Positions 1 through 48,209 of a stretch of 64,000 nt of DNA are shown here, one piece after another. Position 1 is the first letter of the stretch, and every line of letters begins with the position of its first letter. A program made the translations under genes and the position numbers. A model generated the notes under the pieces. The model worked only from the letters and a program-made list of their open reading frames with translations. It had not been told where the DNA came from and did not search any database. The stretch is taken from NCBI RefSeq assembly GCF_000315625.1, contig NW_005434662.1, positions 705,479 through 769,478 on the forward strand. The letters run 5' to 3'. This DNA is from Guillardia theta CCMP2712 (lineage: Eukaryota; Protista; Cryptophyta).

Positions 1-1210
1 AGGGTTGATATGGAGGAGGGGAGCAGGAGCAAAGGGAAGGAGTAGATTACTACAGGAGCCGATCCCTACGAAAGGAATGTCCTGGCCCCAAGCGCTGCAC
101 TCTGATGTGCAATGCGCCGGCGCGTTTGTCCGAGCGGGTAGTAAAGGACCGTGATGGAAGCGTCGAGAGCTCGAGGGGGCCGTGGACGGGACGGGCGTGC
201 CACGGTGTGCATGACTGGCAGGGTCCGTCGTTCCGGTGAGGCCCGGGGATGCTAGTCAAAAGTAGCAGCCTCACGGTCGGCCGGGGCCCGGTCCTCCGGG
301 GTTTTATAGTCCCGCTAAGGTTCTACTCAAGCCTGCCTCAGATCAGAAAATTTCGGGGAAGTTGGGGATGAGGGCTTTGTCGATCGAAGGCGCGTGCGAT
401 GGAGCCAAGTAAGAAGTGAAAGCTATGGTGTTGCTGTTGATCTCTTGCAATTTGTTATGAGGAAGCAATGTTTGCGTATGATTTTACCATTATTTCCTGC
501 TCATCCTGTGATTCTTGATCTTTCATGTTTGGTTGCCTCATGTAAATGTGGCTCTAATTTTTCATTTTGGCATAATCTTATCCCGTCCTCGACCTCATTG
601 TCTCCACATATGATCCCTGAGTTTGGCTATGATGAAGCAAATACAATCAAAGTTCTTCCCATGCAAAGGGCCGTTGTGCCGATGCTGAGAAAACCATTGT
701 CATCTTTGCTCTGAGCCGTAGTTTCCCTTTTTCTGGATGTTGCGCTTCAAATCTTTCTGTTTCTCATGTATGATTTTCTACAGGTTGCTTCCATGCATGG
801 ACCGGATAAGTTGATTTCTTCTTTATGGCTGAATGATGATTTTCAAGAATGCCACCACTCATCATGCGGATAAGCCAGGTCAACAGTGGCTGTAGTGAGC
901 AATTCACCGTGTCATTTAAAGTAAATCAACGTGTACATATCGATCGATCCTTCCACAAGTGTGTTCCACAAGAAAATGTGTCACACATCAAAGCCGACAA
1001 CGAATGTGTAATGTACATGGTTGTGTGATGCGTGTGTTGTGTTTCATGGTCGAGTTGCCTCCGGGCTTTCATAAAGCGATGATATTCTCACACACGGCGA
1101 CAGATGCTGCATGCGGATCGCAAGCAAATCCACACAATCGTTGTCAATCTCAATCGACATCCTGATCAATAGTTTGTTGACTCTAGCCCTTTCATTCTAC
1201 CCCGATATAT

Positions 1211-1743
1211 TTATTCTGACTCCTCAGCGCGCAACTTAGCGTCGCCGTTGGTAACCTTGATCCCAAGTTGCTCAGCACGCTCGACGATAGCCTTCCTCTT
1301 CCTGGTAGAAACGTTCTGTGCGATCTCTGCAAGCACACAGTGAGAATGAGCAAAGCAACAGGGGAAAGAATGTTTCTTATCCTCACCAGCAGCATACTTC
1401 TTGTTGTGCATAAGGAGAAGTTCCAACTCGGCAACGTTGGAGACACGGAACTTGAGGAAACCATCCGGCATCAAGAAACGCGTTTTCTTGTTGGAACCAT
1501 ATCCGATCTTGACGTGCTTGGGAGTACCCTTAAAATGCCTACGGAAGCGACCATCCATACCGTGGGGCTTCCTCCAGGATTGCTGTGAAATCCAGCATAA
1601 GCTTCGAGAACGGGAAGATTTTCTCAACTCACAGCCATTCTCTTGAAAAGGTCGGCATGGAAACGAACGAACTTGTTCGATTTCTTCTTGACAATTTTAG
1701 GGCGAACCGCCGGTCTCAACTTGCTTCTAGAGCCAACAGCCAT
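1211..1743 (-). CDS. RPL32: 60S ribosomal protein L32 (eL32), 3 exons
   Basis: Spliced translation [31 protein letters not shown]...[18 protein letters not shown]...[16 protein letters not shown]...[21 protein letters not shown] matches eL32 signatures; GT-AG introns. Confidence 0.96.
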
Positions 1744-2572
1744 CCTGCACGGATAAGATCAGAACATGTAACCTCATGGTTCAATGGCATTAAAGTTTTG
1801 AACAGAAACAATGCACGGTGGATCACAAGGCCATTTCCATGTCTGTGTGTAGGGTCCTTGTACATCAGCTTTCACGTACCCAGAACCAATCGCACAAATA
1901 TGTCACGGCATACTTTGTTATAGAAAGAGAATCACAAACTCGTCACACACAGTTTCTTTGCACTGTATGATGCTCACGAAACATATGCAATCGAGTCAAT
2001 AATCGAATTTTCTATTCCATCAACCAACACCACAACGAAAAGAATGCCTGGTGTCAAAATGTTGCATCAATCCCATACACCACAGTATGACAGAACATTA
2101 CACACACTGATCGGCATGATCTCTCCAGTGAAACATGCCCAGCTGCCTTCAAGCCTCCTCTTGCATTGCCCCGCCCCCGCCAGCTTCACTCATGCCTCTC
2201 CTCCTTCCCCTCGTGCATGCTCGCTCACCCTCTCTCGCGCGTGCCGAAGAAAAAAAAGAAACGGTTACTTCCGTTGGTGGAAGGATCTGAGGGTGATGAG
2301 ATTTTCAATCTACAGGGGTAGGGGTCACCTCAGATTACAAATTGACCGGTTCTTTATAGATATTTATTTAACATAAAGGACGGGTACTTTGCGAAGATTC
2401 GCTTTCAAAGCGGTTGAGGGGGTAGGGTCTCATTGAGGAATGAAGGTGCGGGATGAGGGGAAACATGAAGGAATTGGGCGAGTGGAGGGATGAGGTCCAC
2501 CGGTGAACGAGGGGGATGAGGTGATACGATGGGATGAGGTGGGGATGCGGGTCTCCCTGAGCTGACTGCGCC

Positions 2573-3977
2573 ATGATCAGTGTCCCACAACTGCTCGCTG
2601 CCATCATGGGCGTTGGGGTGGCGCTGGGCGCAGGAGGAGCGATGCTAGTGATGTCGACCAGTAGGAAGAAGAGGTTAGTATGCTGTGCAGACTATGATGA
2701 TGTGCGGGAAGTCCCGTCTCGAGGGACGGGAAAGGATGACCCCATTAGTAGTGACGGGGCGATGGCAGGAGGAGGCTGAGGCTTGTGAGGCTTCCTGATG
2801 CAGAAGGGAAATCCTATGCTATAGATCCCTCATCGCCTGATATTCGAAAGATAACAAAGGTTTCTATTTTCTGTCCCTATCTCCCACTAATCGCTTCAAG
2901 GCCTTCCGGTGGTACTCTCCCCAGTTTTCACCCAAAGAAGTGCCGAGGTTCTACGACCTGTCAAGTATAACTGAGGTACGCAAGACACTCCACGTGAATC
3001 GAGTGTCGGCACTGATTTGAGGTTAGAACCCGACGGCTTTCCGAGATGTATGAGCAGAAAATACTATGCCGGTGCCACTGTGAACTGTGTTCCGCACAGG
3101 TGATAGACATTCTCGTCTCTCGATACTCTGCTCCTTCGTCCAAGCCAACTCACGTTGTAGCCTTCGATGCAAGGTCAGCCCGATCTCCTGTGCTGTCTAT
3201 CTAATCATGCCCACCTCAGGGGGTTTGCGATCGGGGCACCTCTTGCTGTTCAACTGGGAGTTCCACTTGTGCTCCTGAGGAAATCCTCCAAGAATCCAGG
3301 TGACCTCGTCCTCTTCTGAAGCTTGTCCGTCGCCCGCAAGCTCGTCCCGTGATCTCCGCTCAGGGATCCTCGTCCAGAGCGAAGGATACACCAAGGAGTA
3401 CAAGGAGGATCATGATGAGCGCATGTGCCTGCGTATCGGTGAGTCTGCAGCCTCCTCCCACTGCTGTGATCCGCATTGATTGACCTGCTCCAGATGCGCT
3501 GAAACCCGGGGACAGCGTCATTCTTGTGGATGATCTGCTGGCTACAGGAGGGACTGTCACCGCAGGACTGGAGCTCGTCTGCAATCTTGGGGCTACCGTC
3601 CTGGAAGTATGCTTGATCCCCTAGGAACCCGTAGTGAGATTCAGCTTGACAGGTCTGCTGTATCCTGATCTTGTCAAGCTTCAACCCCGTCTCGCGTATC
3701 CGAGCTTCGCACGGTCCGGAGCGTCAGAAGCTCTTTGGAAGGGTCTGACGAGCTGATGTCGCAGACGGGAGGTTCAAAGACGTTTCAGTCTTCTCCATCA
3801 TTGAGGACTCATCCATACCGCCCATCAACTGTAGAGACCCTGTGAATTGGAAGGTAATTCTTTGTCCTGCCTTCTGACTGGTGTCTGAACAAGGCTTCAA
3901 ACTTTTCTCAGGAGCGCAGGAGGATTATCGACGGCGAGCGAACAGATTTCATCCGTTCTACTTACAACCTCTCATAG
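2573..3977 (+). CDS. APRT: Adenine phosphoribosyltransferase with N-terminal hydrophobic extension, multi-exon
   Basis: Exon fragments [31 protein letters not shown] and the PRPP-binding loop [13 protein letters not shown] (~3517-3555). Confidence 0.88.
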
Positions 3978-4119
3978 CTTTATTAGTCTGCACATGATCT
4001 TCTTCAATATTCTTAGCTCACACGACCGTTCTCTCAACGAAACACCCACCTTGAGAACCGCTCCTTCGCATCTGCAACATGAACGGGATAAATGATAAAT
4101 CCGCTCCGCTGCTGCAGGC

Positions 4120-5858
4120 TCAGGCGAGGATTTGAATCATTTCCTTATGGAAACACCAGTGGATAACAGCGCAGGAGATTCCGATAAAAACTGCGGCTAT
4201 GGCCACGATCGCTACCTTGGAGAATCTCTCCACAGTGTCGTTCTCCTCCCTGATCTCCTTGTCCTCCTTAGAGAATTCGTGCTTGGGGTTGTTGCAGTCG
4301 ACGAAGGAATCCTCGAGAACGCAAGGAGCGATCCCTTGCTTCCTCTTGACGACTGAGCTATGTGGAGTTGAGGGCTGACCTTGCACCTGCTTGGGGGAGG
4401 AAAACATATCCTCCTCAGGTTGCCCAATACGTGGTTCGCAGCCAGCCACTGTGAAAAGTTTCGAGTCAGCGGGGTTGTTGTGGCGTCTTCCATGAAAGCA
4501 TCTCACCTCTCGACGACGTCTTGGTCTGAGACTTTTCGAGCTGCTCCCTCTTGTACTTCAAGAACCTTTCTTTGATCTCTTGCGTCTTCCTCGAGGATTC
4601 AAGCAGCACGCTCTTCTCATATGGGACCTGATCGAAATTCCTGTCAACCTTGCCAAGAGGGTTGAAAGTACTCGCTACCTCAACCGAGTTCGTAGGCGTC
4701 TTCTCAGCTGATGATTGAAGCTCACAAGGCGAGTCGTTTGTAGTGCAGCCCTTGACTCCAGATGGTGTAACCACCACCTCCTCATTCCCGGTCCCAACAC
4801 CCCCTGCCTGCTCCTGCAATTGCACGACAGCGGTCAAGGGATTTGCAGTAGGCTCGAGATCTACAACACAAACCTCTTGCAGGAGTTCGTTTGCGTCCTC
4901 TGGCTGGGGGAGACGTCAACCACCAGCAGCGTGGGACCCACAGATTCCTTACCTCGAATTTCACACTTGCAGGAGAACGGCAGGTCTTCTCCTCGTTGGC
5001 AGGCTCAAACTCTTCTCTTTCCAGCGATCGCGCAGTCTCAACAGTTTCTCCTCCTTCTTTGTCGGCATTGTTGGGCGACGGCGAAGATGCACTTTTAGGA
5101 GGGCTGTCAACTTTTTGTGAAGAAATTTGAGGGAGCGGTTCTATCTCCCGCCTCGGCGCCGTCGGTTCGCTCTTGGCTGGCTTGATAGGAGGAGAGATTG
5201 ACTTTGGGCCAGAGAAGCTCTTCGGGCTTATCTTTCCCTGAATTTTCTTAGAAGCACTGTCGAATCTCTTCTTGTTGAGCGAGCTAGCAGCCTTAATCTT
5301 TGATAGCGGCTTCTCCTCGCTCTCTTTCGGGTTCGGCGTCGTAGAGCTGCTCGTCAGCTGCTCTTTCGGGAACAACGTTGGTATCTTCGACTTTACCGTG
5401 TCTTTGCTGTTGGTGACGCCCTTGCAAGCAGCACTGTCTCTCCTCTGCGATGTGCTCTGCTGGTCGTGCCCGATCTGGTTCCGCTGTGCGCAAACGGAGT
5501 CAAAATTCAGCGTTGTCGGTGAGAAGTCGTCATGGTCGAAGTTGATGTCTTCGAGCCCATGCAGCTCTGCCGTGTTGGGGGAAAGATTCTGGCAGCTGCC
5601 TGCTGTAGATGCAGGGAGGTTCTGACCCTTCGAGGGGGATACCTTGTCCAGCTCCAGTCGCCTGGGCGACGGCAATTCCACCGCCATCTCCTCGTTTTGG
5701 AAGCTCTGCATCCTCAACAGCTCTTGAGTGTTGGGCGAGATGCTGCCCTTGGATCCTTGCTGGTCCTTTGTCTCGCTCGTGCTGCTCCTCTTCATAGATT
5801 CCCCGTCTGCAGGCAGGCTAGAGTTGGTACGATCCCGCAGAAACGACTTGAGGTGCAT
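4120..5858 (-). CDS. Hypothetical low-complexity S/K/P-rich protein with a C-terminal transmembrane segment
   Basis: Long ORFs 4782-5858, 4466-4837 and 4120-4506 joinable by short introns; terminal hydrophobic stretch VAIVAIAAVFIGISCAVIHWCF. Confidence 0.6.
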
Positions 5859-6099
5859 CTTGACTGATGTCTAGGCCCGTCCTCTAACTGACTCCTCTTC
5901 CTTTCTCTTCCTCCTCGTGTCAGGCTCTTCCTCCCTTGACCCGCTCCTCTTCGCTCCAGCCGCCTCCCTCCCCTCGCTCACTGACGGTGCTCGTTGATGA
6001 GTCCCAAGAATTCAAAAAGGCGTGCAAAACGCCGGGATCAACTCCTTTACTCAAAGTTAAGTTAAAAATCAATACGAGGACAATCAACTACTTCAAATG

Positions 6100-6640
6100 C
6101 CGGGCGGCGCCCCCATCCCGGAACGCCGGGTCCCCCTGGCACCGTGACCGTCGTCACCCGGGCCAGTGCCAGCCAGACTCGGCGGTGAGACAGGCTCTCA
6201 CCCCGGGCCCCGGGCCCGACCGTACGCGGCCCGGGCCCGGCCGGTACTAGCCTGAGTCCGAGTCAGCCCGAGTCTGCCGCCCGGCCCTGGCGCGGCGGAC
6301 TCCGATCGGACCGGACGCCGCGGGGCCTGCCCGGCCGGCGGCGGCCGGCCGGGCCGGGCAGCCGCCCGGGACCGTACGCCGACGGTGGGCCATTGCAGTA
6401 CGGTCAGGCCCGGGTGCAGTGCCACGCACGGAGCCTCGGAGTATGGCCCGGGTGCCCGGCACTGAGGCTGGCCCGCCGGGAGGGCCCGCCCACCGTCCGG
6501 GTGCCCGCCCGGTCACTGGGTTGCTCGGAAACTTGTGAACCGTGAGCCTGTGTGCGAAATCGGAAAATGAACTTGCGGCCTTGTCGGAACTTCACTGAGA
6601 GTCAGTGACCGGGCCGCGCGGCCCGGCCCGGCTCTCGGAG
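6100..6640. repeat. GC-rich intergenic island built from short palindromic words (CCGG, GGGCCC, GGCC, GTAC, TGAGTC, GTCAC)
   Basis: Sharp compositional shift between two divergently transcribed genes; similar islands at ~10310-10530, 13215-13300, 15780-15870, 46250-46340 and 58340-58520. Confidence 0.7.
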
Positions 6641-6722
6641 TCCAGAGCCACATGGTCATATCATGGCAGTTGACAAGAACAGTTATTTTGACCGTTACAC
6701 CTGCTTCCTCTTCCCAAGCAGC

Positions 6723-8246
6723 ATGCGCGTGTCCCTGCGCTGGCTGTCTGCACATGCTGTGCGGCTGCGCCAGTCGGTGAAGCCGAACAACACTGCCTCC
6801 TCCACTTGCCCCTCCTTCTCCTCCTCCTCTCGATGTGCAACTTACTCTCCTCCCCAGTCCCCCTCTTCATCAGCCCTCCCTCCCTTCACATTGGTTCGCT
6901 GTGCCGTCCCCACGTTGGGGCGCAGGCTTGTACAGTCTCGCTTGCAAGGCCATCGCCTTGCTTCGTCTAGTTCAGCTGCAGAACGGGAGCCTACATCTGA
7001 AGAGAAAGCAAACATGAAGAAGGAGGAGATGAAGAAAAAGGACGTCCCCCTTGGCATGCTGAAAGCTGATGGGACAAGCAAGCGCTTTTACAAGCAGGCA
7101 GGTGTGCAGCAGGTGAAGCAAGATTGCCCTCGGACTGGAATGCTCAGAACAATGTGGTCGTTGACGTTGGATGGTCGTGGTGTTCGTACACCTGCAAACA
7201 AGCTACTCACCGTGCCCACCAAGGACATGGCCATGGTTGGAGATTTTCTGTCTATCTTGTTCTGGTTGCTGGTGACGTTGATATGAAGGCAATTGCCATG
7301 GAGTTTGATGTCCAGGACCTGAACATTCTTCCATATACAATGCCTCTTGTACGGTGGCTCTTTCACCCCTGATGGTTGCTGATTTCGCATGCCAGACCAC
7401 CCTGGCTACAACGTCCATTGACCAGATCTCGCGCTCGGATGTTCGGCAGAGCACGTAAGACATGAGGAGAACCATGTGTATCTTGTACAGAGGGCTGAAA
7501 GGACACGTGACAGCATAACCTCATTGCTTCGTCAGTTCCGAAACGACCTACTTACCCTCCGAAGGTGCCGTGATTTGCGCTCCTACTACCCTTCGAGCTA
7601 AGCTGACGCGTCGGCAGTAACGATCCTCCCGACCTTGTAGAGAAGGAGGAGAAGATCTGGGGCAGAATTTGTGATTGGGCAGAGAGTCATTACAAGTTCA
7701 AGGTGGGCTCTGCGATCGAGGGGAAGGTTTCACTGACTTGTCAGCAGCTGGTGATCAGCCATGAATGGCTCCAAACAGAGCAGCCCGACGATATCATGAG
7801 CACTGTGCGAGATGACCTCCTAGGTCGATCTGACTGGAGATTGACTGTGATTGATCAAGTGAGAGACGTTTGCCAGTCGATCGCCCTGCCTGACGTTTAC
7901 GGTTCAGGTCGCGGGGTCCACGGGCTCCTTGATGCTCTCCTTGGCTCTCTCCCAGGGCTTCCTTAATGCAGATGAGGCGATGAAGGTTGGAGATCGCATG
8001 AGCTCTCCGTCTATCTCAACATTCATTGTCTCTTGACTTGTTGTGAAGGCCGCTCGTCTGAGTGAAGATTACAACGTTGAGCGATGGGGAATGGTGATGA
8101 ACAGCGGTATGGGCGGACATGATATCGATGCTGCAGACATGCGTTCGAGGTTTGTCCTGCTTGCATGATTTCCCTGATGTGACACTTATGGCAGGCTTGC
8201 AGCGGCATGGCTTTACAACCGGCTCTTGCCAACTGAGTATCGCTAA
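6723..8246 (+). CDS. ATP12: ATP12/ATPAF2 mitochondrial F1-ATPase assembly chaperone, multi-exon
   Basis: KRFYKQ...LTLDGRGVRTPANKLLTVPT...AIAMEFDVQ...PYTMPL...TSIDQ, plus C-terminal AARLSEDYNVERWG...GGHDID; R/S-rich mitochondrial-type presequence. Confidence 0.9.
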
Positions 8247-8434
8247 ATCACAAGGAACAGAAGATCGGATGATGCACTTAGTCACAAGTGGACGGATGAC
8301 TAGGGAATATCCACAATGGTAAGAAACACGTATGTGGAAATCACTGAGAACGCCTTCACGCCCATCGTTCACATCGGATGCTGCGACAATGTTCGAACCT
8401 TGCTCAAATGCTGTATTGCTTACATGGCACCATT

Positions 8435-10085
8435 TTACATGCTCTTTGCTGTTAGCCAACCCAAGAGTTTCTCATTGAACAACTGCGGCACTTCATCATG
8501 AGGGCAGTGCCCAGCCTTCAAGCCAATGTACTCGGCAGAGGGCATGAGCTGTAGTGTTCTGTCTGCCCTTGACTTGGTTATCCATGGATCGTTCTCGCCC
8601 CATAGAAGCAAAGTAGGAATCTTCCTCGCCTCCACGAAATTCGAGAGAGTGTTGACCGTCACATATCTCTTGCCTCCCCTTCCTCCGATGGTCGTCTGGA
8701 AGAAGACTTCAAAGGCATTGGGTTGGAGAGCTGGCCTCTTGATCAGATCAACGAGATCGTCATCGATCCTCGACTTGTCATCAGTGTAGACCAGCGCCAG
8801 TGTGGATGCTATCCTTGCCTCTCTCGTCAGGAGGAATCCTCCAAAGGAGATCATGCTGAGCCACGAGTCAAGTTAGGCCTCGCAGAATCAGTTCTCTCAC
8901 CGCTTGATCAGCTCTTGCACACGATCCACCAGCGTGTATGGAGGCGCAGGAGCATCCATCTCTGAGAGGATGCTGTCCTGCGGGAGACCCGCGTACGGCT
9001 CGACATTTCCATCTTCTGCCAGGGGGCCTGCGGAGTTCACCAGCACAAGGCCCCCGATGCCTTCAGCCGACCCGAGCCCTTGGAAGGCGAGATCAGCACA
9101 CCGCACGGTCACTGGCGCCTGCATTACCTGCTGCCAACATGGCGGAATATCCTCCCAGAGAGTTTCCAGCCAAGATGACTTGCTTGCTGAAGGAAGCAGG
9201 AAGGATCACTTCCTTGATGAAATCGCAGATCTGCGCAGCCCAGACGTGCCCCCCCCACACATTGAACTGCAGTCAAGGTGAGCATGGCTACAGCTGACGC
9301 GTCTGTGCTTGCAAGCATGAAACAGGGAACTCACCCCGGTAGGAACGTCAGGCTGCTCAGAGAAGCCAAACCCGAGAAGGTCGATGGCATACACCGGCCT
9401 GTCGGCCGCGAGCTGCTCCACGTTGTCTCTCCAGTGCTGATGACCAACAGCTCGTCACTTCACACATATCCAAGTCATTCACATCACTTCGATCGATGCT
9501 CCAAAGCCATGGATGAGCAGGATGGGGTTCTTCTTTCCCTCCGGGTTGACGCTCGCATACCTGGCCTTGCGATCACACCAACGATCTTCCGGAGCTTTAA
9601 CAAATATGACCTGACCCTCATTGTCTTCCATTGCCAGAACTGGCCTTCTCTCCACTACACCAAACCAAGAACAAGGTTCAGATGCAAGGAAATGCTGAGA
9701 GCCAGCATGATCGCACCTTTTGCACTGGCTGCGTTGTCGTGACTGTTGTGGCGCCCTCAACCGACGTCTCTGCAGGTTTTGCAGACATCTGACCAATGAG
9801 GGACGAGATTCTTCCACTTCTCAGAAGTTTTCGCACTTCTTCATCACAACTTCTTCCAAAGCTTCGGCAGTGTCTGCCATGGATGGTAGGTGCAACGCGT
9901 GCTTTGGTAGTGAGGGGAGAAGGCCTGACGGTGCTGCTGCGAAGCTTGCTCATCTCAGGAAGCTTCGATGAAGCGGAGGAAGAGAGCGGAGAAGCAGAGA
10001 AGGAAGTTGCAGATGTGGATGGACCGAGCATGAAGGCCATGGAGGCCGGCGGAAGGCTGAGAAGCAGCACAAGCGCCGCCGCCAT
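8435..10085 (-). CDS. Plastid-targeted alpha/beta hydrolase, pheophytinase/chlorophyll-dephytylase-like
   Basis: Signal peptide ending ...SMA|F; motifs LLIHGFGAS, YAIDLLGFGFS, GNSLGG (nucleophile elbow), LLWGENDPW, GHCPHDEVP. Confidence 0.85.
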
Positions 10086-10538: not shown

Positions 10539-12702
<2,164 letters not shown>

Positions 12703-33880: not shown

Positions 33881-34429
33881 GGGTTGACTGGAGGGAGCAG
33901 GTGAGAACGTGTCGGTGGTCCACACTCTGGTGCCAGCAGCAGACATGCCAAACCACAAGACGGGGACGCATGAGGCGAGCTCGGTGAGAGCTGGGGTCCT
34001 GCTGGACGTGTTGCGCTCTCCTGACCTGCTGCCATTGCAGACACCCGATGGTTCCCTGCTACTGAAAGCTTCTGCGAACCTCTCGGCTGGCGATCAGGTG
34101 CGTTATCCTCCTCATCCTCCTCCTCCTCCTCCTCCTCCTCCTGCTATGAGTAATACTTCTCCCTTCCCTCCCTCCCTCCATCCATCCATCCATCCATTAT
34201 GCNNNNNNNNNNNNNNNNNNNNNNNNNNNNNNNNNNNNNNNNNNNNNNNNNNNNNNNNNNNNNNNNNNNNNNNNNNNNNNNNNNNNNNNNNNNNNNNNNN
34301 NNGAGGGAGGGAGGGAACAAGGGAGGAGCTGTAAAGGGGCGTGTCGGCGTGATCGTGCCCTCCCTGCAGGCATTGTTCGCCAAGATGTCCATGGGAAACA
34401 CCTCGATCTTCTTTCAGAGCCCCGAGTGA
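32055..34429 (+). CDS. SET-domain methyltransferase (Rubisco LSMT/SETD3-like) with N-terminal TM segment; interrupted by an assembly gap
   Basis: RGLKANGTIHDHEILFRIP, LAVYLIHE, SFWRPYLCALP, WAWACSIIMSRTW, LVPAADMPNH; the first exon is inferred through a GC donor (CAG|gcaagt at 32088). Confidence 0.8.
33736..33880. repeat. Intronic (GAGCAC)n and (GAGGAC)n hexamer microsatellites
   Basis: Visible tandem arrays; another (GAGCAC)n array at ~43789-43851. Confidence 0.9.
34203..34302. other. Assembly gap (100 N)
   Basis: Run of n. Confidence 1.
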
Positions 34430-39914: not shown

Positions 39915-41541
39915 ATGCGGATCCTGTTAGCGGCGGCTATGGCGGCGGTGGCGGCGCACGAGGGAAGCGCGTTCATGCTGTCTCCTTCATCCTCGTCCTT
40001 CATCAAGGTCTTAGCGCAGAAGATGCCTGCTCTTCCTCTCCTTCATCCTCCTTTGCTCCCCTTCCCTTGCCGAATGCGGGTTTGCCCCCTCCAGGCGCAC
40101 GTTCACCCTGTCCGCAGGCGCAAGGATCGGTGTCAAGCTTCGCCGGGAGATTCACTGGAGTGACAGCAAGGAAAGCTACGCTGAGAAACAGCCATGCCTG
40201 CTCGGTCAAGGCGTCTCTCCAGGGTCAGGACGTCATGAACAGGTTCGATGCCATCGGCAACTCCGCAATCCAGAAGTTGATGGACGCTCTGCCGCTGCGA
40301 GAGAGTAACCACGTGGAGGTGAGCCGATGTATTCCTCCATGCATGTGAATGCCAACGTGTGACTGTAGGGGCTGGGTGCAAGCAGCTGGATGGAGGGTGG
40401 CTTCTCAGGCTCTGTTCAGGGCTGGACCGCAGAACCGAAAGTTGGATGGTGGGTGCTCGACGCAGTCCTCTCCTCGCGCTCTGACAAACTGCCGTCAGGA
40501 TCTCCAAGTCGAGCATGAAAAGCAGCGACTTCTCCACTGGCTCCTCCAGCCTCGTCGTCCTCATGGGGTCTGCCGCCTCCACTTCCTCCTACGGATGCCT
40601 GCTCTGACCGTTGATCCCCGCAGGCCATCCTATGACACTCCCCACCTGTGGGTGGACCTAACCTTCACACCGCAAGAGATCCTCGTCAACCTCGACTTTC
40701 CTGCAAGGTGCTCTCCCTCCTTCCCTGGGGATCCCAGGGCCAAGTCTCCTGCTCCGACACATGGAGTGGAGGGAAACATGTAACATTTGTCCTCAGGGTC
40801 GACCTGGCGGCAAACAAGGACTACATCGCGGAGTACTACAAGGTAATGGCACGCTGGGTGAGCTTGAGACTGACCAGGAGGGCCCGAAGAGCGCGTCAGG
40901 GTGGTATGACTCTCTGATGAACGATGCTGCCACAACGGCGCTCGCCGGAGGGAAGGGGCTGAACGAGCGAATCCTTGCTTCGCCAGTGAGACAGGCCCGG
41001 ATATCTCTTGGGCTCTGCCTCACCCTGCTGCAGATGTCTCTGTCTCTCTCCATGGCGAAGGATCAGCAGTCTCTGGATTTGATCGAGAGGGCTGTGGACG
41101 AGCAGGTCAGAGGAAGCTCTTGCGCAAACTCGCGACACAGTTGAAGTCGCCGACAGGTTTCCACTTGGTGCTCATGGATCCAGGGAGCCCGTGAGGTCAA
41201 CAGGATGCAGGTGGGTGGGCCCGGGGAGAAGGAGGGGTGGGAGGGGGAGGAGTCTGACTCGTGCCCGACTCAGAGAGGAAGCATGTTCGCGAGAGATACC
41301 CAGATGCAGCGAATGCGCTTCTCTTCACTGGTGCTGAGGGCTCCGCCTACGTTTACACATGATCTGACATGTTAACAGTTCCAAAAGTTCCAGTCCGTCT
41401 TCCCCAAGGATCGCGCCCAGCAGGTCTTTAGCTGCCTTTCAGGCTCGGGTATCCTTACCTCTGCCTTGTCAGCTTGCAGCCGCTATGGTCGGGCCAGGCG
41501 ACGAGCAGTACGTGGGCAGTGCCGGAGACAACTCTGAGTAA
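39915..41541 (+). CDS. Plastid-targeted red chlorophyll catabolite reductase-like protein (ferredoxin-dependent bilin reductase superfamily)
   Basis: Leader MRILLAAAMAAVAAHEGSA|F; PSYDTPHLWVDL...LVNLDFPAR/VDLAANKDYIAEYY, ASP, WCSWI and RD motifs resemble RCCR. Confidence 0.65.
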
Positions 41542-41673
41542 GGAGAACGAGGTACATATGAGGGTAGAGAGAAGGGGGGGCAACGAGTTTTGCCTCCCTA
41601 TTCAAGTGAGTGAACAAGAACTTGTGTTGGCTTCGTCAAAGCTCGGTCCTGTGCCTCGAAAAAGAGATGAACA

Positions 41674-43788
41674 TTAGAAGGAGGAGGAGGAGAAGGAGGA
41701 GGAGAGGGAAATTCTCAACCCACCACTCGTCGATCTTCATGTGACCAGCGTGGACGACTAGCCCATCCTCCTCCCACATGGCATGGAAGAAAACCCCTTC
41801 CTGCACGGCAACCTCACAACGAGACTGCCAGCAAGACGCTCACCGGTCCATGCATGTACGCCGCCCACCAGCTGAGAGAGTCGAGGACGAGGATGGTATC
41901 TGCCTGCACCATGAATCCCAGCAAGCTGCTCTCTGTATAGTCTTCAATGAAGGAAACCGCAGGCATCATGTCCAAGAGTTCGTCCTGCGAGAAGTTATAC
42001 TGTCCCTTCCCTCCTCCCATCTCACTCTTCCTTCCTCCCTCCTCCATCCCACTACTTCCCTCCTCCCTTCCTCCTCCTCCTCCTCCTCCTCCTCCTCCTC
42101 CTCCTCCTCCCTCCCTCCCTTCCCCATCTTCCATTCTCCCTGATCTTCCTCCTTTGCCTTCCCCGACTCGTCCTTCAGCTCCCCTTTCCTCCAGCTCCTT
42201 CTGACCTTAATGCAAAAGCGGGAGGCCTTGGAGGGCTGACAGAATATGACGACATGCCAGCTGCGGTGCTGGGCGAGACTTGTGAGCAGGAAGGAGCGGA
42301 GGACGCTCTCTCTGTGATCAGACTCGATGAGAACTGCGCAGGTGGGAAAGCTGAAGAGGGACTTCCATGAGGAATACTCCTCCTGGTATGCCAGAGCTAA
42401 CCTGAGGAAGCTTCAAGAGACTTGCAGAGAGAGGGAGAGAGAGGGGGTGAGGGCGAGAGATAGAGGAGGGGGGTGGGGGGCGGGGACAAGAGTAATATGC
42501 GAAAAGGAAGATGGGCCGAGGGAGCGAGAGGGAGGATGGACCGAGGGAGATGTCATTGACACCTTGCCGGCAGCTTGAAGTGCTCGAGGACAAGATCTCG
42601 ATGCATGGGGTGGAAGAGATGAGGAGAGAAATCTCCATGCATCATGACCGAATCTCCGGACCTTACCGCCCTCATCGAGGGCTCCGGGATAGCAAACGAG
42701 CCTTCCTGGCCCACAGCCCCGATGCTTGACGTGTGGAGCAGATGAAAGGGAATCTCATGTATACTGTCTGACCGTCTGAAGTTTGACAACCAAGAATGTC
42801 TGTACGACAATCTCTCCTTAGAGCGGTTCCCTCCGCAGATCACCTTGCTGTCCCCATAGCACCAGTTGAGCGGCAGCAGCACTTGAAGCCTCCCCGCGTC
42901 CTCGTCCTGGTCGTCATTAAGGGCAGCAGCAAGTGCGACGCCAGACGCCACTGCCGTCATCATCCGACCGAGACTTTCTCCCATATTGCAGACCCCGTTG
43001 GCATGCTGAATGCAAACAGACACGAATCGCTCTCGTGAGAACCTCGTGGCTTCATGCGGAATTTTCTGTACGGCAATCCTGCGGGGGAAGGGGATGTCCC
43101 AACTGCAGAGACCATCAGCTCATGGGGATGAGCAGATGGAAGATCGAGGGTAGAGAAGGAAAGAAGTAAGGAGGAGAGTGGGGTTTTGGGGGNNNNNNNN
43201 NNNNNNNNNNNNNNNNNNNNNNNNNNNNNNNNNNNNNNNNNNNNNNNNNNNNNNNNNNNNNNNNNNNNNNNNNNNNNNNNNNNNNNNNNNNNTTCCTATA
43301 CCTCTCCATCTAGACGTGTTTCTCTCTATCTCCTCTCCCCATATTGCTGTTTGAGGAAGTGGCGAAGAAGAGGACGAGGGAGAGGAGGGAGAAAAAGGAA
43401 GGGGGAGGAGAGGAGCAAGGGGAGGGAGAGGAGCTGACCCGTCCGGGTAGAGGTAAGAAGGCGACAGGATCCTGACGAGTTGAGGATGGTGCGAGAGGTA
43501 ACGATTGAGATGCGACTCGTCGTGCCAGAGGGCAACCACCTGCATCGCAAGCTTCAATCTAGGCTGCAGAGATTCATTTATCACATCGTTCTCGTCGTCT
43601 CGGTCGATCGCCTCGCTGATCGCTGCTGACATCTGAAGGAACTCGTCCGTTCTCCCGCCGATGAAGCCGCCGGCGAAGTAACATGGCCTCAGATGCTCTG
43701 AAATTGGATGGTCAAGAATATGTCGATGATAGCTGTTTGCAAAAGAGCAATCACGATGACTGAGAAATGAAACAATGCAGAGGGGCAG

Positions 43789-43853
<65 letters not shown>

Positions 43854-46196
43854 GGACAGCACTTGACCAGGAGCGATATATGCTCTCGAAGCTGTTCTTG
43901 TCTCTGGTGTTCCCATGCCGTCTTGAATCATATGTCGGATGGCAACAAGGGGCCTTGGGAAGATGTCAGGATCTCGCACAGCAACACAAGATGAGGAGGA
44001 GATGGCGAGAAGAGGGGGTGAGAGAAGATCAAGTCGAAAGGACATAGAGAACATGAGAGGAGGAGCGGAGAAGAGGAGCGGAGGAGGAGACGGCAACCTG
44101 TCCCTTGTGGGGAAGATTTCTACCGCCGCAATGCCTTTCTCCACTATCACATCAACATCAAGGTAGAAGACGACGTCTGTTTCGGTCTTCAACTTGGAGC
44201 TCTGAGACAGGAAGTAGTGATAGCGGTAGAGCGTGTCTGCTGGGAACCCTCTGCGAGAAAGGGCGTGAGGAGGAGGAAGGGGGGACGCATCCTCTGACCT
44301 GCCCCTAATCGGGATGACTTCGGAGGGAGAGGGCATGCGCGAGAAGATCTCTTCCGCTCCCCTCGGGTCGTCCGTGAAGGTGAAGAAGCAAAGGTGATGC
44401 TCACTGACGAATCTTTCCCTCACAGTCCTGATGTGCTCCGGCAGGTATGCGCAGTACCTGCAACAGGCGCCGACGTCAACCGCAGCCGACCGGAGTAAGT
44501 CTCTTGCCTCCCGGTGCAGATGGTGAGGATCCCAACCCTCATCTTGTTGAGCATGGCTCCTGAGACAGTCAGATCGGCTCTGTACTTGACGTTGACCGCC
44601 TCGTCGGACGGGGATAGCTGGCTCTCATGGATCCGGTAGAAGACGAGGACGCGGGGTACGATCACGGTCTTCACGCTGCTCATCAGCACTGCTCGCTGCC
44701 ACAGCCTCAAGTCTTCTGCTGGGAGTTCAGGTCGATAGCGAAGGGGACGGAACAGGTTCTCGAGGTCGGCGGAATCCGAACAGACCTGCGGGCCTCAGTT
44801 TCAACGGGCCGTCATCGCCCGGAACCCTTACTCGAGCATGCTGGTGCAGAGTGTTGGAGCGCGCATGCCACTGGGCGTCTTGTGAGGATTCAGCAAGGCC
44901 CTGCTTGCAGTTCTGCAGCGCCAGGAGATGTAAGTTCAGTCCACCATGTTCGAGCAAAGAGAGGCAGACCGTACCAACGAAGACAGAGTCTTCCAGAAGC
45001 TCCTCGAGTATGCGACTCCAGGGTGACAGATAACGTTGTGATCTTCTCGAAGCTGACTGAAGATGTCCTCCTCGCTCACATGGTCCCTGCCCAGCAACTG
45101 TCGCCACACCCGTCAGAGACGAAGCTGAAAGCGCTTCACTCACTTCTTGTGCGGTGAGGTACACAGGATTCATCTTCGTGTTGATAACATCCACACCCTG
45201 TCGCCTTCATGTCACCCCATGGACATCTCTCGTTCTCCTGCAGTCTCACCTCCCCTGCTTCCACAACCCGCACAAAGTACGAGGAAACCAGATCCGCTCC
45301 CTCCATCACCGCCTCAGCCTGTGCTATGTCAGTCGATCTCACTTCCATCCCCTCATCGTTTCAACCTGCAACTTGAAGCGATCAGGAGAGTAGTAATCGT
45401 CCAGGTTGACATTGAATGCCACGTCATAGTCCTCACTAAACACCCAGTCCAGAAGGAAGTTCATCGCTACGGCATGGCTCTGAAATTCCCTTGAAAAGAA
45501 CGTATACCGCTTGCCCTCAAGTCTATGCAGGTACTGTTGCATGAAAGAGTGATACTCTCCTCCATAGTTCAACTCCACGATGTCGAAGAAGGGATAGTTC
45601 TGATTCAAGATGCTCTCAATGCACTTCTCGATCCACCGATCCTCATACTTCAACCGAGCCTGTTTGTGATACAGGATCGCAACCCCTTTCAACGGTTTAC
45701 CCGAAGTGAAGCCCCTTGAGTCGTCAATTGTGGGAGCGCTACCCATGATCTCATCGTAATGCCGAACGTCATGGAAGTCATCCTCGGAGTCTACGACAGA
45801 GAAAGAGATCTCTTCTTGCTGCAAAAATGGCCTGGTAGACTCAGCCCCTTCGATTCGGATGGTGTGAACACCCGGGCTCAAGTCGGCCGGAAAGACCTTG
45901 GAGTAGGCAGCACCATTACTGATGTCGACCTCCTCGTAAGTCTCTTCGTCCACGATTATCCTCATCGACAGCCTCTGACTGCCAGCCCTGCAAGCTCCGC
46001 TCCTCGAAGAGTTCCCGTACGACAGGAAGAAGGAGACGGGAAGTTTGCCGCGCACGAGGACCCAGCCTCGCATCGGCGATGTCGCATGCACCCTGATAGG
46101 GATCTCATCGTCTTCTCTTCGTCCTCGCGCATCTCCTCCTCCTCCCATCGTGCTCACCACCACCAGCATCGCCATGGCCAACCTCCACATCGCCAT
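41674..46196 (-). CDS. Secretory multi-domain glycosyltransferase: GT2-like + GT6 + degenerate GT11-like
   Basis: Signal peptide MAMWRLAMAMLVVVST; CIESILNQ...NLDDYYSPDRF...YRIHESQLS (GT2-like); RVGILTICTG, FTFTDD, FYLDVD, YFAGGFIGG, WHDESHLNRY, LSPSYLYP (GT6); SLSWWAAY (GT11-like C-terminus). Confidence 0.8.
43193..43292. other. Assembly gap (100 N)
   Basis: Run of n, apparently within an intron of the GT gene. Confidence 1.
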
Positions 46197-46344
46197 CCCA
46201 CCTAGAGCAGCATTTTTCCTGGGACGCAGAGACCCGAGTTTGCTGAGTAGGCCTAGATCGACCGGGCCGGGGCCGCCGCCATCCGGGCCCGGGCCCGACC
46301 CGGCCTGAGTCACTGACCGGACCGTCGGTCACGGTTACGGTTCA

Positions 46345-48209
46345 GTTGTTAGGCTCAGTTGTACTAGGATACCGAAGTAACTTGTAACTAGTAATGCCGA
46401 CATCAGTTGACCTTCTAACTGACTTAAAGTCTAGCATTGTAGTAGATTGCATTGAGCCACAGGTTCTTTGGTTCGTTGGAATGGATTATGGCGAGTCTGG
46501 TTCTGGTGTCTAGTGAATAGATTCCTGACTCCGCTCTGCCATTCTGCCAGTGTTGATAAGGGGCAGCCCGTTCCAGGTAGATCAGTGTTGTGTTTTTCAT
46601 ACATTCTCAGAGATTTCGTTGACGTCATCTCACCGCGGTTGTCTACGCGGCGTACAATGTTGTCTACCGCGTACAACTCTACTCATACAACTGTTCACTT
46701 TCAGTTTCGCTATCGACAGATTCTTCAGAGGTAATGTCTTCAAATTCTTGGCGAACATCCCATATGCTGATGGGTATAGATCTCATAGGTGTCGGTCTGA
46801 AAGCTTTTTTTTCATCCTTGTGTGCTTCGTAGTACACTGGGCCTTGTTCCCTCCCCATCTGAGAGAGTTTTCATTGGTGTAATAGGTGAGTCCGTCCGGG
46901 GTCTGTTTCTGAGTGATGGGTTGCTAGTCGAGGTTTAGAAGTGAGAGAAAACTCTCCTGTTGTATTACTCGTAGCAAGGATTTCTTGTCCCATTGTATTG
47001 AGTTGGTTGTAGAGATAAATCTATTGGTTTTGACGTCTGCTTCTTTGATTTCGATGTACCATAGATATGTCTTGGGGCAAAAATAGAATGGTATGAAATC
47101 CTTGTTTGTAGTGATGATACCATGTGTTCCTTTCGATACGCTCCCTTGGTGAATTACAGTATTACCACTGTTAGTTATGCGCCATATCGATAATAGATTT
47201 GTGACAGCATTCTTGTCATGAATAATTGTGGCAAGAGTCGCGAAAGCTTATGCCTTGTTGGTGACTGATTCCATTTTGCCTACGAGTAGACCTCAATGAT
47301 GGATGTGGTAATTTCGCTCTAGTATGCAAACTTTTTCCGAATCCAGTTACTATCACAGAGAACACTGATAGTTGCTCCTGAGTCAACGATAGCGAACAGC
47401 GAATGCTTGTTCTGTGTTGATCTACAGGTCATGAAGACTTTGGGTACTGCTTCAAATATGGAATTTAGGAACCAGGGGATGGATACTTTCGAAAACAGGG
47501 TCGCATCTAACTGGATGTGGTCTGTTTGAAGAGGTATTCCCTTGGATTTACGTGGTTGTAGTGTGTGACATTTCGAGTAATCTTTTCCAGATTTATTCTT
47601 ATGCCTATTGTTTTTAGCAATCATAGTGGATTTAGCGGCAGCCTTGCGAACAGTTTCTTTCAGACGTCTTGGAGGTGAAGAAGCCTCCTCTTCGTCTTCA
47701 GACATTTTTCTTCCTCGCTTGCCTCATCTGCGCTGTAATCGTTGGATTCAGCGGCATGATTGGCTACTCTATTTAGTGCTCGGGTGAGGTTTACAATGAA
47801 ACTCTTGTCACCCAAGTCTTGTTTCTTCTTTAACTTCGACTTTGGGTAACTCCCGCTGTCCTCATTTGAACAGTTGGGTTTTTTCTGGCGAAAGTTTTTT
47901 GCGTTGGGTTTCCCACCGAACTTGGGTTTGTTGAAGCCCTTATTCGGTTGGTTCCCGACTTGTGCGGCCGCTCGAGTAGCTTCTTGTTGTTTCTTTCTCC
48001 AACTGTAGTATTGGACGTTCGGTAGACCATGTTACTCTTGCGCTTTGGGCCTTCTCGCTTTGAGTCTCCTGGTGTTTCTGCCTTCCGTTTGTTTGGACTT
48101 GGTAGATCCTTGCTTAGTGAGGTGAAGACGTTCTTCGTGGAATCTTTGAAGACTTTCAATTGTTTGTTGGGGGCCAGTTCAGATGATAGGCTGTGAAGAA
48201 TGAAGCTAG
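46345..48209 (-). mobile_element. Decayed Ty1/Copia-like retrotransposon fragment (Gag-protease region)
   Basis: AT-richer and intronless with stops/frameshifts; protease-like AIVDSGATISV followed by NLLSIWRITNSG; K-rich Gag-like ORFs; no RT or integrase recognised. Confidence 0.6.

Follow-up and report, generated by a model that had tools for sequence, protein, structure and literature searches.

The stretch analysed here is a window of 64,000 nucleotides from the cryptophyte Guillardia theta CCMP2712 (contig NW_005434662.1, positions 705,479 to 769,478 of the forward strand), and the coordinates given below are positions in this window. On its minus strand, between 41636 and 46196, lies a gene of 16 exons and 15 introns whose exons, joined from the junctions of transcript contigs, give a single frame of 1004 residues. 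The encoded protein carries, in this order, a signal-peptide-like N-terminus, a domain of beta strands, a glycosyltransferase domain resembling family GT2, a GT6 domain and a domain derived from GT11. GT6 is the family of the ABO blood-group enzymes, and the original prediction had read the locus as a single-polypeptide assembly line for an ABO-type glycan; the fusion and its viral kinship are borne out by the present analysis, whereas the presence of three activities is doubtful. What we regard as the probable reading is an expressed, intron-rich nuclear tri-domain gene with a complete GT6 and a decayed third domain, acquired through exchange with giant viruses.

The gene and its transcript contigs

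The coding region (41636..46196, minus strand) is delimited by transcript-contig junctions, canonical boundaries and the single open frame. It runs from an ATG at 46196 to a stop at 41638-41636, hence its true 3' end lies 38 bases past position 41674, where the original prediction had placed the limit of the feature. Exons 1 to 4 occupy 46196-45366, 45318-45250, 45197-45144 and 45097-44975; exons 5 to 8, 44912-44832, 44785-44508, 44457-44299 and 44250-44098; exons 9 to 12, 43953-43868, 43697-43585, 43539-43439 and 43102-42563; and exons 13 to 16, 42401-42206, 41984-41844, 41800-41724 and 41648-41636, the last given to the end of the coding sequence, all on the minus strand. Four public runs were mapped to positions 41000-46800 (5801 letters). 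Those called X1 and X3 here consist of assembled contigs from two runs of different studies, presumed, though not certain, to be RNA. Their junction ends read CT..AC on the plus strand, which corresponds to GT..AG for a minus-strand gene, and once the cuts are shifted within ambiguous bases the 15 introns are GT..AG throughout, with one GC..AG. The X3 contig, of 4011 nucleotides, spans 46146 down to 41470, and the X1 contig extends to 46201, 5 bases upstream of the ATG.

An assembly gap (43193-43292) falls inside the locus and could have hidden a false join. It is enclosed by intron 11 (43103-43438, minus strand, GT..AG ends), and the junction 43102->43439 across this intron is present in both X1 and X3. 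The protein over the junction, YLYPDG followed by WDIPFP, aligns without loss to the orthologs and to BoGT6a, the GT6 enzyme of Bacteroides ovatus. The gap, being inside an intron that is spliced out, is therefore harmless to the reading frame and leaves the fusion intact, so that the predicted single polypeptide with GT2-like, GT6 and GT11-like parts stands as one frame through 15 junctions. The stretch is also present in RNA-type runs from five studies, and the GC fraction around the gene (0.53-0.57) is near the window mean of 0.53. Taken together, introns, base composition, expression across studies and orthologs show a genuine fusion of long standing that is functional as a gene.

On the 3' side there is a convergent neighbour gene (about 40350-41650, plus strand) with small GT..AG introns at 41103-41153 and 41208-41270. 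The 3' ends of this neighbour and of the fusion gene overlap, and the X3 contig passes through both genes. Intron 9 holds a dinucleotide microsatellite (about 43760-43850) whose translations are runs of (LV)n, (SC)n and (AR)n; the contig depth of 755-9104 found there in every run, with many loose ends, is a repeat artefact and not expression.

Domains of the fusion protein

Pfam searches were performed exon by exon, database searches used single exons or proteins taken from databases, and the joined 1004-residue model served in local comparisons only. Hidden Markov models (HMMs) built from the relatives of each domain score 179 bits for the GT2-like, 238 bits for the GT6 and 32.6 bits for the GT11 part of the Guillardia model.

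The signal-peptide-like N-terminus (residues 1-22, 46131..46196, minus strand, delimited from sequence and hydropathy) has a short hydrophobic core of 13 residues, followed by a GGGG run and charged residues, and the orthologs P0003 and P0007 likewise begin with a hydrophobic leader. No further membrane-span-like segment was found in the 1004-residue model, where no other 19-residue window exceeds a Kyte-Doolittle value of 1.6. The N-terminal all-beta domain (residues about 32-135, 45792..46103, minus strand) was recognized from an AlphaFold2 model of exon 1 and from the alignment. Seven beta strands are predicted at residues 34-134 with low confidence (predicted local distance difference test, pLDDT, of about 41-79 over the block), in agreement with the beta-rich domain proposed originally behind a signal peptide. 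This domain has no Pfam match, and a Foldseek comparison of the exon 1 model (pLDDT 59) with the PDB gave no convincing match, only weak Ig/FN3-like ones with template modelling (TM) scores <= 0.3. According to the alignment, the eukaryote-like orthologs alone have it in common with Guillardia; the virus-like proteins described below do not have it.

The GT2-like domain, of the GT-A type (residues 167-445, exons 1-6, 44609..45698, minus strand), was identified through PF00535, the family HMM and its motifs, which on the minus strand are FDIVELNYG (45561-45587), NLDDYY (45390-45407), EDLRLW (44699-44716) and YRIHESQ (44618-44638). It lies above the PF00535 cut-off and has an acidic DXD-type motif, as required of a GT2 member, and FDIxExNYG, NxNxDDxY and EDxxLW are conserved throughout the tri-domain family. 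The sequence search found no relative of this domain with a solved structure.

The GT6 domain (residues 469-690, exons 6-12, 43081..44539, minus strand), assigned through PF03414, the family HMM and the alignment with BoGT6a, has the full set of catalytic signatures. With exons 10-11 read through (43429-43704), PF03414 matches with an E value of 1.6e-10 and 40.7 bits against a cut-off of 25, and in a six-frame scan of the whole genome the fusion gene scores 33.7 bits. The family alignment places the motif GFPADTLYRYHYF at 44211-44249, DVD within 44148-44162 and the RH of the acceptor loop within 43923-43943; YFAGGFIGG lies at 43654-43680 and WHDESHLN at 43504-43527, all on the minus strand, and DVD, YFAGGFIGG and WHDESHLN are located where they had been foreseen. 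Both the DXD and the catalytic Glu of W-H-D-E-S are thus in place, and GFPxDTLYRYHYF, DVD, YxAGGFxGG and WHDESHLN are conserved in all members of the tri-domain family. The best solved-structure match is BoGT6a (PDB 4ayj), a minimal GT6 catalytic domain to which the GT6 part of the ortholog P0003 aligns end to end with E 4e-30. In this alignment the DXD falls on the NAN of the bacterial enzyme, and WHDES on the motif of Trp189 and Glu192. The fusion GT6 retains the equivalents of BoGT6a His122, Thr134, Trp189 and Glu192, the conserved acceptor-site residues, as well as the Y-x-A-G-G donor-pocket motif, and differs from it in having DVD in place of NXN. A DXD motif is shared with Parachlamydia PaGT6 and with the GT6 of cyanophage P-SSM2 (PMC3516806). 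Unlike the bacterial and phage enzymes, the fusion GT6 is the middle domain of a 1004-residue, intron-containing eukaryotic protein. From its motifs it looks catalytically competent.

Concerning the donor, the A-G-G triplet at the ABO specificity positions, which had been taken as a hint of N-acetylgalactosamine (GalNAc), is also found in BoGT6a (reading YYAGG), an enzyme described as a GalNAc transferase acting on 2'-fucosyllactose (PMC3516806), and this hint holds. Human ABO GTA and GTB and the bovine alpha-1,3-galactosyltransferase belong to the same family, with DVD and WHDESHLN in common, and the ortholog GT6 aligns to the ABO chains with E of about 1e-17; the vertebrate enzymes differ as single-domain type II Golgi proteins with a stem region. 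At the site that confers a GalNAc preference on GTA (positions 266/268) the fusion GT6 has a small residue. Judged from these motifs, GalNAc is the more likely donor. The acceptor is another matter. In the virus-like GT6 domains the acceptor loop reads HPGFY, as in BoGT6a; in the eukaryote-like ones the loop that directly follows the conserved His has lost length, by 7-8 residues relative to the virus-like proteins and by 4 relative to BoGT6a. Given this shortening, the 2'-fucosylated (H-type) acceptor assumed originally is not assured.

The third domain, of the GT-B type (residues 719-1004, exons 12-16, 41639..42996, minus strand), was delimited by HMM, hhalign and alignment, and is degenerate. 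On the minus strand, GVCNMGESLGRMM stands in place of GGLGNxLFQ (42958-42996), HGDFSP in place of GYFQS (42622-42639), AVLIESDHRE in place of the HxRRxDY region, with a 7-residue deletion (42308-42337), and VVIFCQPS in place of FxxFSDD (42230-42253); SLSWWAAYM (41853-41879) is the GT11 motif that has been kept, and its SLSWWAAY lies where it had been foreseen. PF01531 gives E 4.8e-3 and 16.6 bits, under the cut-off of 23.9, which falls short of family membership, and the GT11 part of the fusion gene is not among the six PF01531 matches in the genome at E<=1. Descent from GT11 is nonetheless established by the C-terminal S-x-S-W-W-(A/G)-A-Y motif and by profile comparison: the domain reaches its 32.6 bits against the GT11 HMM of the virus-like proteins (HMM positions 6-257), hhalign matches GT11 with a probability of 85% and E 6e-6 for the last motif region only, and the domain aligns collinearly with proteins that have Pfam GT11 at E 1e-9 to 1e-28. 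The original prediction was right both in reporting a GT11-like tail and in suspecting it degenerate because HxRRxD was missing.

The decay is not peculiar to Guillardia. The fragment from Hanusia phi is in the same state, with the last GT11 motif alone surviving and the HxRRxDY region replaced and 7 residues shorter, and the first half of the GT11-like domain is 76% identical between the two algae. An environmental ortholog, L100 (downstream open reading frame, ORF; GC 0.58, adjoining a eukaryotic-type gene), reads GVHVTSLLDF at the HxRRxDY position, a different loss of the Arg pair. The virus-like GT11 domains keep GGLGNxLFQ, GYFQS, H[VI]R[RK]xDY, FSDD and SFSWWxAY. Identity between Guillardia and the environmental ortholog is 31% in the C-terminal half of the GT11-like domain and 56% in GT6. 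In related fucosyltransferases the Arg at the HxRRxDY position binds the phosphate of GDP-fucose and is essential. Since the motif is lost in Guillardia, Hanusia and the environmental ortholog, it is unlikely that the third domain of the alga still works as a fucosyltransferase, and its retention is most likely due to another role. Of the proposed three fused activities, the fusion stands and the third activity is doubtful. The loss of the GT11 motif and the deletion in the GT6 acceptor loop co-occur in the eukaryote-like clade, and together they suggest that the algal enzyme may no longer make a fucosylated H-type intermediate.

The fold itself may have been kept, as judged from a Hanusia proxy, P0001. 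The alignment used for folding consisted mainly of viral GT11; in the resulting model (pLDDT 72) fucosyltransferases take six of the first seven places among the structural matches, with Z of 7.5-8.8 (AtFUT1, POFUT2 twice, FUT8, NodZ and POFUT1); a Foldseek search of the PDB with the C-terminal proxy gave nothing significant.

Relatives of the fusion and their phylogeny

A HMMER scan with exon 12 returned six proteins only, among them the Hanusia phi fragment, the closest named relative, 76% identical over the common part. Word searches with exon 12 (no match) and with the Hanusia fragment (itself only) are subject to length limits and are no proof of absence. P0003 is a 975-residue environmental protein in which leader, beta domain, GT2 and GT6 are followed by the beginning of the C-terminal domain. 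Used as a query, it leads to proteins of 746-1275 residues whose single chain has Pfam GT2 and GT6 together with an unequivocal GT11 (E 1e-9 to 1e-28) and which are collinear with the Guillardia model out to residue 973-984; in P0009 to P0015 the three Pfam domains lie within one ORF. Identity among orthologs is 38-56%, depending on the region. The order GT2-GT6-GT11 is constant in the Hanusia fragment, the environmental eukaryote-like orthologs and the intronless ORFs (750-1290 residues) on AT-rich contigs, so that the same three domains, in the same order and in one ORF, make up a tri-domain family that also forms one clade.

The contigs of P0009, P0011, P0012 and P0013 show tightly packed genes on both strands, many without family match, and encode intein-bearing helicases and clusters of nucleotide-sugar enzymes. 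The GC of these contigs is 0.22-0.33, with 0.48 for that of P0012; over all virus-like tri-domain contigs but this one it is 0.19-0.33. A scan of IMG/VR added two more tri-domain ORFs (L020 and L021, GC about 0.20 in both), one on a contig named GVMAG; in their vicinity are genes for topoisomerase IA, GT4 and, with a strong match, GDP-mannose 4,6-dehydratase (GMD), besides several of family GT25. The nearest kin of the algal gene outside the eukaryote-like group are tri-domain ORFs on giant-virus-like contigs, which bears out a kinship with viruses. The GMD gene of L020 (L020:21066-22112, Pfam E 6e-119) has GT25 and GT4 genes around it, and the tri-domain gene is about 9 kb upstream of it.

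The 384 matches in IMG/VR were considered as a widespread fusion and rejected as such, since domain HMMs on the 80 loci that were fetched show mostly standalone GT6 of about 240 residues; fused in these 80 are only L020 and L021 (tri-domain) and L022 (GT2-GT6). Next to the standalone viral GT6 there is often a separate GT11 gene on the same strand, and in seven IMG/VR loci an ortholog of the family-specific GT2-like domain is present too. Unfused GT2-like orthologs occur in L037, L043/L044, L032, L046, L034 and L026 (177-233 bits, with NxNxDDxY). In L032, L037, L043/L044 and L046 the GT2-like, GT6 and GT11 genes are separate on the same strand in an operon-like cluster; L026 and L034 have the GT2-like gene with GT6 alone in the fetched part. 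In bacteria and archaea GT6 is mostly standalone as well, often with GT11 adjacent. Eleven bacterial or archaeal loci have a two-domain GT6-GT11 ORF, none with the family-specific GT2-like domain. The bacterial GT6-GT11 ORFs, of 531-907 residues (L103, L104, L106, L108-L113, L119 and L140), come from hosts that include Hoeflea, Rhizobiaceae, Planctomycetota/Pirellulaceae, Kuenenia and Haliotispira.

Trees of the GT6 domain were built from nine virus-like and four eukaryote-like tri-domain proteins with standalone viral GT6, in one case with bacteria, and with vertebrate GT6 left aside. The tri-domain proteins form one clade (Shimodaira-Hasegawa approximate likelihood ratio support of 98, and 95 with bacteria), which nests among the standalone GT6 of viral contigs and bacteria. 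With the nearest standalone GT6 as root, a tree of the full-length alignment gives supports of 96/94 for the tri-domain clade and 100/99 for the eukaryote-like group. Within the clade there are four lineages whose branching order is without firm support. A single origin of the tri-domain fusion is supported by these sequence trees. The bacterial two-domain fusions fall apart from this clade, hence GT6 and GT11 have been fused more than once.

Two fragments of the eukaryote-like ortholog in the P0003 cluster, P0017 and P0019, are labelled at NCBI as proteins of a 'Promethearchaeia archaeon' metagenome-assembled genome. The full contig, with GC 0.58, an in-frame insert resembling an unspliced intron and a neighbour of eukaryotic type (TSNAXIP1_N), looks like mis-binned eukaryotic DNA.

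Other genes of the same pathway or families are found in G. theta. The GMD-like gene noticed in the window is indeed present (10676-11927, minus strand, intron-split), about 30 kb from the fusion gene; the functional linkage once suggested for it is unproven. A second GT6 protein, L005:4995-8222 (G000:C4:396994-400221, +), is an uninterrupted ORF of 1076 residues in which a low-complexity N-terminus and a hydrophobic segment precede GT6 (Pfam E 4.7e-27), with about 450 more residues that match no family, and resembles the fusion gene in the GT6 part only, at 27% identity. An intact GT11, with HVRRSDY and SSFSWW, is encoded elsewhere in the genome, and a CAZy-style table gives three GT6 and three GT11 modules for G. 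theta (PMC6260743). Another assembly gap of the window, at 34203-34302, is outside the fusion gene.

Origin and function of the fusion

Three other explanations of the locus have to be weighed. An artefact, be it a mis-join over the gap, a merging of neighbouring genes during contig assembly, or contaminating or recently inserted viral DNA, could be suspected given that a gap does lie within the locus, that contigs cannot prove a single molecule and that the X3 contig continues into the convergent gene. It is hardly credible, as the gap sits in an intron spliced out in two runs, one frame stays open across all 15 junctions, the same order recurs in single ORFs of orthologs and virus-like proteins, there are 15 spliceosomal introns with a GC of 0.53-0.57 near the window mean of 0.53, and the stretch turns up in runs of several studies. 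That all three domains are active, making the protein a self-contained assembly line for a blood-group A/B-like epitope (beta-galactose, alpha-1,2-fucose, alpha-1,3-GalNAc or galactose), has more in its favour: the three families recur together, as neighbours in viral contigs and bacteria and fused in giant-virus-like contigs and bacteria, the virus-like copies retain every motif, the residues with which BoGT6a binds 2'-fucosyllactose (His, Thr, Trp and Glu) have their equivalents in the GT6, and both Guillardia and Hanusia still have the C-terminal domain, in a conserved form. We nevertheless hold it to be unlikely for the alga, where HxRRxDY is gone, with a 7-residue deletion in Guillardia and Hanusia and another replacement in L100, GGLGN, GYFQS and FSDD are altered too, the Pfam GT11 score is under the cut-off, and the acceptor loop of GT6 is shortened in exactly the clade that is without the GT11 motif.

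The third alternative concerns the direction of transfer. The family might have arisen in cryptophyte-like eukaryotes, from which giant viruses captured the gene, as uptake of host genes is known for giant viruses. The rooted full-length tree leaves room for this, with the eukaryote-like clade as one of four lineages in no firm order and a giant-virus monophyly (53/65) that fits a sister relationship. We consider it a possible but doubtful course of events, because the tri-domain clade is nested within standalone GT6 of viral contigs and bacteria, other viral contigs have unfused GT2-like orthologs adjoining GT6 and GT11, the GT11 of the intronless virus-like copies is intact and thus in the ancestral state, and the eukaryote-like copies are the derived ones, with motif loss, loop deletion and an added leader and beta domain.

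It should be noted that several points weigh against the reading of a virus-derived gene with a complete GT6 and a decayed third domain. The transcript support consists of assembled contigs that are only presumed to be RNA, and a raw RNA run, X19, gave a single mapped read with about 6% of the run read, which is uninformative. The PF00535 match on exon 1 (E 2.8e-5) is marginal, with 24.6 bits where the cut-off is 23.3, the signal peptide is judged by eye and hydropathy, and the donor and linkage of GT6 are inferred from motifs. As the cryptophyte acceptor loop is shortened, the acceptor of GT6 may differ from that of BoGT6a and ABO. The GT11-like domain, kept in three eukaryote-like lineages, clearly has some role, and an unusual catalytic mode is possible. 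The tri-domain contigs look like giant viruses from gene content, base composition, the IMG/VR listing and one GVMAG name. Finally, with a giant-virus monophyly of only 53/65, the full-length tree is compatible with either direction of transfer.

According to the reading of viral exchange and a decayed third domain, the fusion protein would enter the secretory pathway, where the GT2-like domain may add a beta-linked sugar. The GT6 would then add an alpha-1,3-linked GalNAc, possibly galactose, as suggested by DVD, the catalytic Glu of WHDESH and the A-G-G shared with BoGT6a. The GT11-derived domain, with its last motif and presumably its fold kept, would most likely be a non-catalytic module, for instance a scaffold or an acceptor-binding part, and fucosylation, if any, would have to be supplied by another enzyme, for which the intact GT11 of the genome is a candidate. 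An ancient exchange with giant viruses is the most likely way in which cryptophytes came by the gene; introns, leader and beta domain would have been gained after transfer, and the third domain would have decayed. Going by their intact motifs, the virus-like proteins would be the better candidates for a complete three-step assembly line.

Precedents exist for both the set of families and the stringing together of domains. A blood-group-B-like glycan is the joint product of GT2 WbnJ, GT11 WbnK and GT6 WbnI in E. coli O86. These are the three CAZy families of the present fusion, and many of the bacterial and viral loci analysed have GT11, GT6 and GT2 side by side; the O86 genes, however, are separate and all catalytically competent, whereas in Guillardia there is one polypeptide whose GT11 part is without the key motif. 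PBCV-1 A111/114R is a three-domain glycosyltransferase of a giant virus. The giant algal virus PkV RF01 has ORFs with two glycosyltransferase domains, including GT25+GT6 (10.1101/2020.07.30.228163). Both resemble the tri-domain family in having several such domains in one viral protein, PkV RF01 also in the occurrence of GT6 in a giant algal virus and, given the GT25 genes beside the tri-domain gene on L020 and L021, in the company of GT25. They differ in that the GT2-GT6-GT11 combination was not found described; in the literature, which we covered incompletely, we found neither this fusion nor its link between viruses and cryptophytes.

The locus represents a fully domesticated, spliced and expressed algal GT6 inside a three-domain fusion whose closest fusion kin are on giant-virus-like DNA. 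The recurrent pairing of GT6 with GT11, as neighbours, in independent bacterial fusions and in fusions with the GT2-like domain, is a strong comparative argument that they serve one common glycan. Intact virus-like proteins and a decayed algal copy form a natural experiment, in which a multi-enzyme protein loses an activity and keeps the domain, and provide testable targets, namely possible mimics of A/H-type epitopes among the glycans of virions or of the algal surface. A more far-reaching proposal, which we put forward only tentatively, is that algal giant viruses encode a single-polypeptide synthase (GT2 + GT11 + GT6) for a blood-group-A/H-like glycan that cryptophytes captured and repurposed. 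GT6 is described as three clades, of vertebrates, of bacteria and of a phage/Parachlamydia group, with the horizontal route between them an open question (PMC3516806). If the proposal is true, giant viruses would be a plausible vehicle by which GT6 passed from the phage and bacterial world into eukaryotes, which bears on how the ABO family was transferred.

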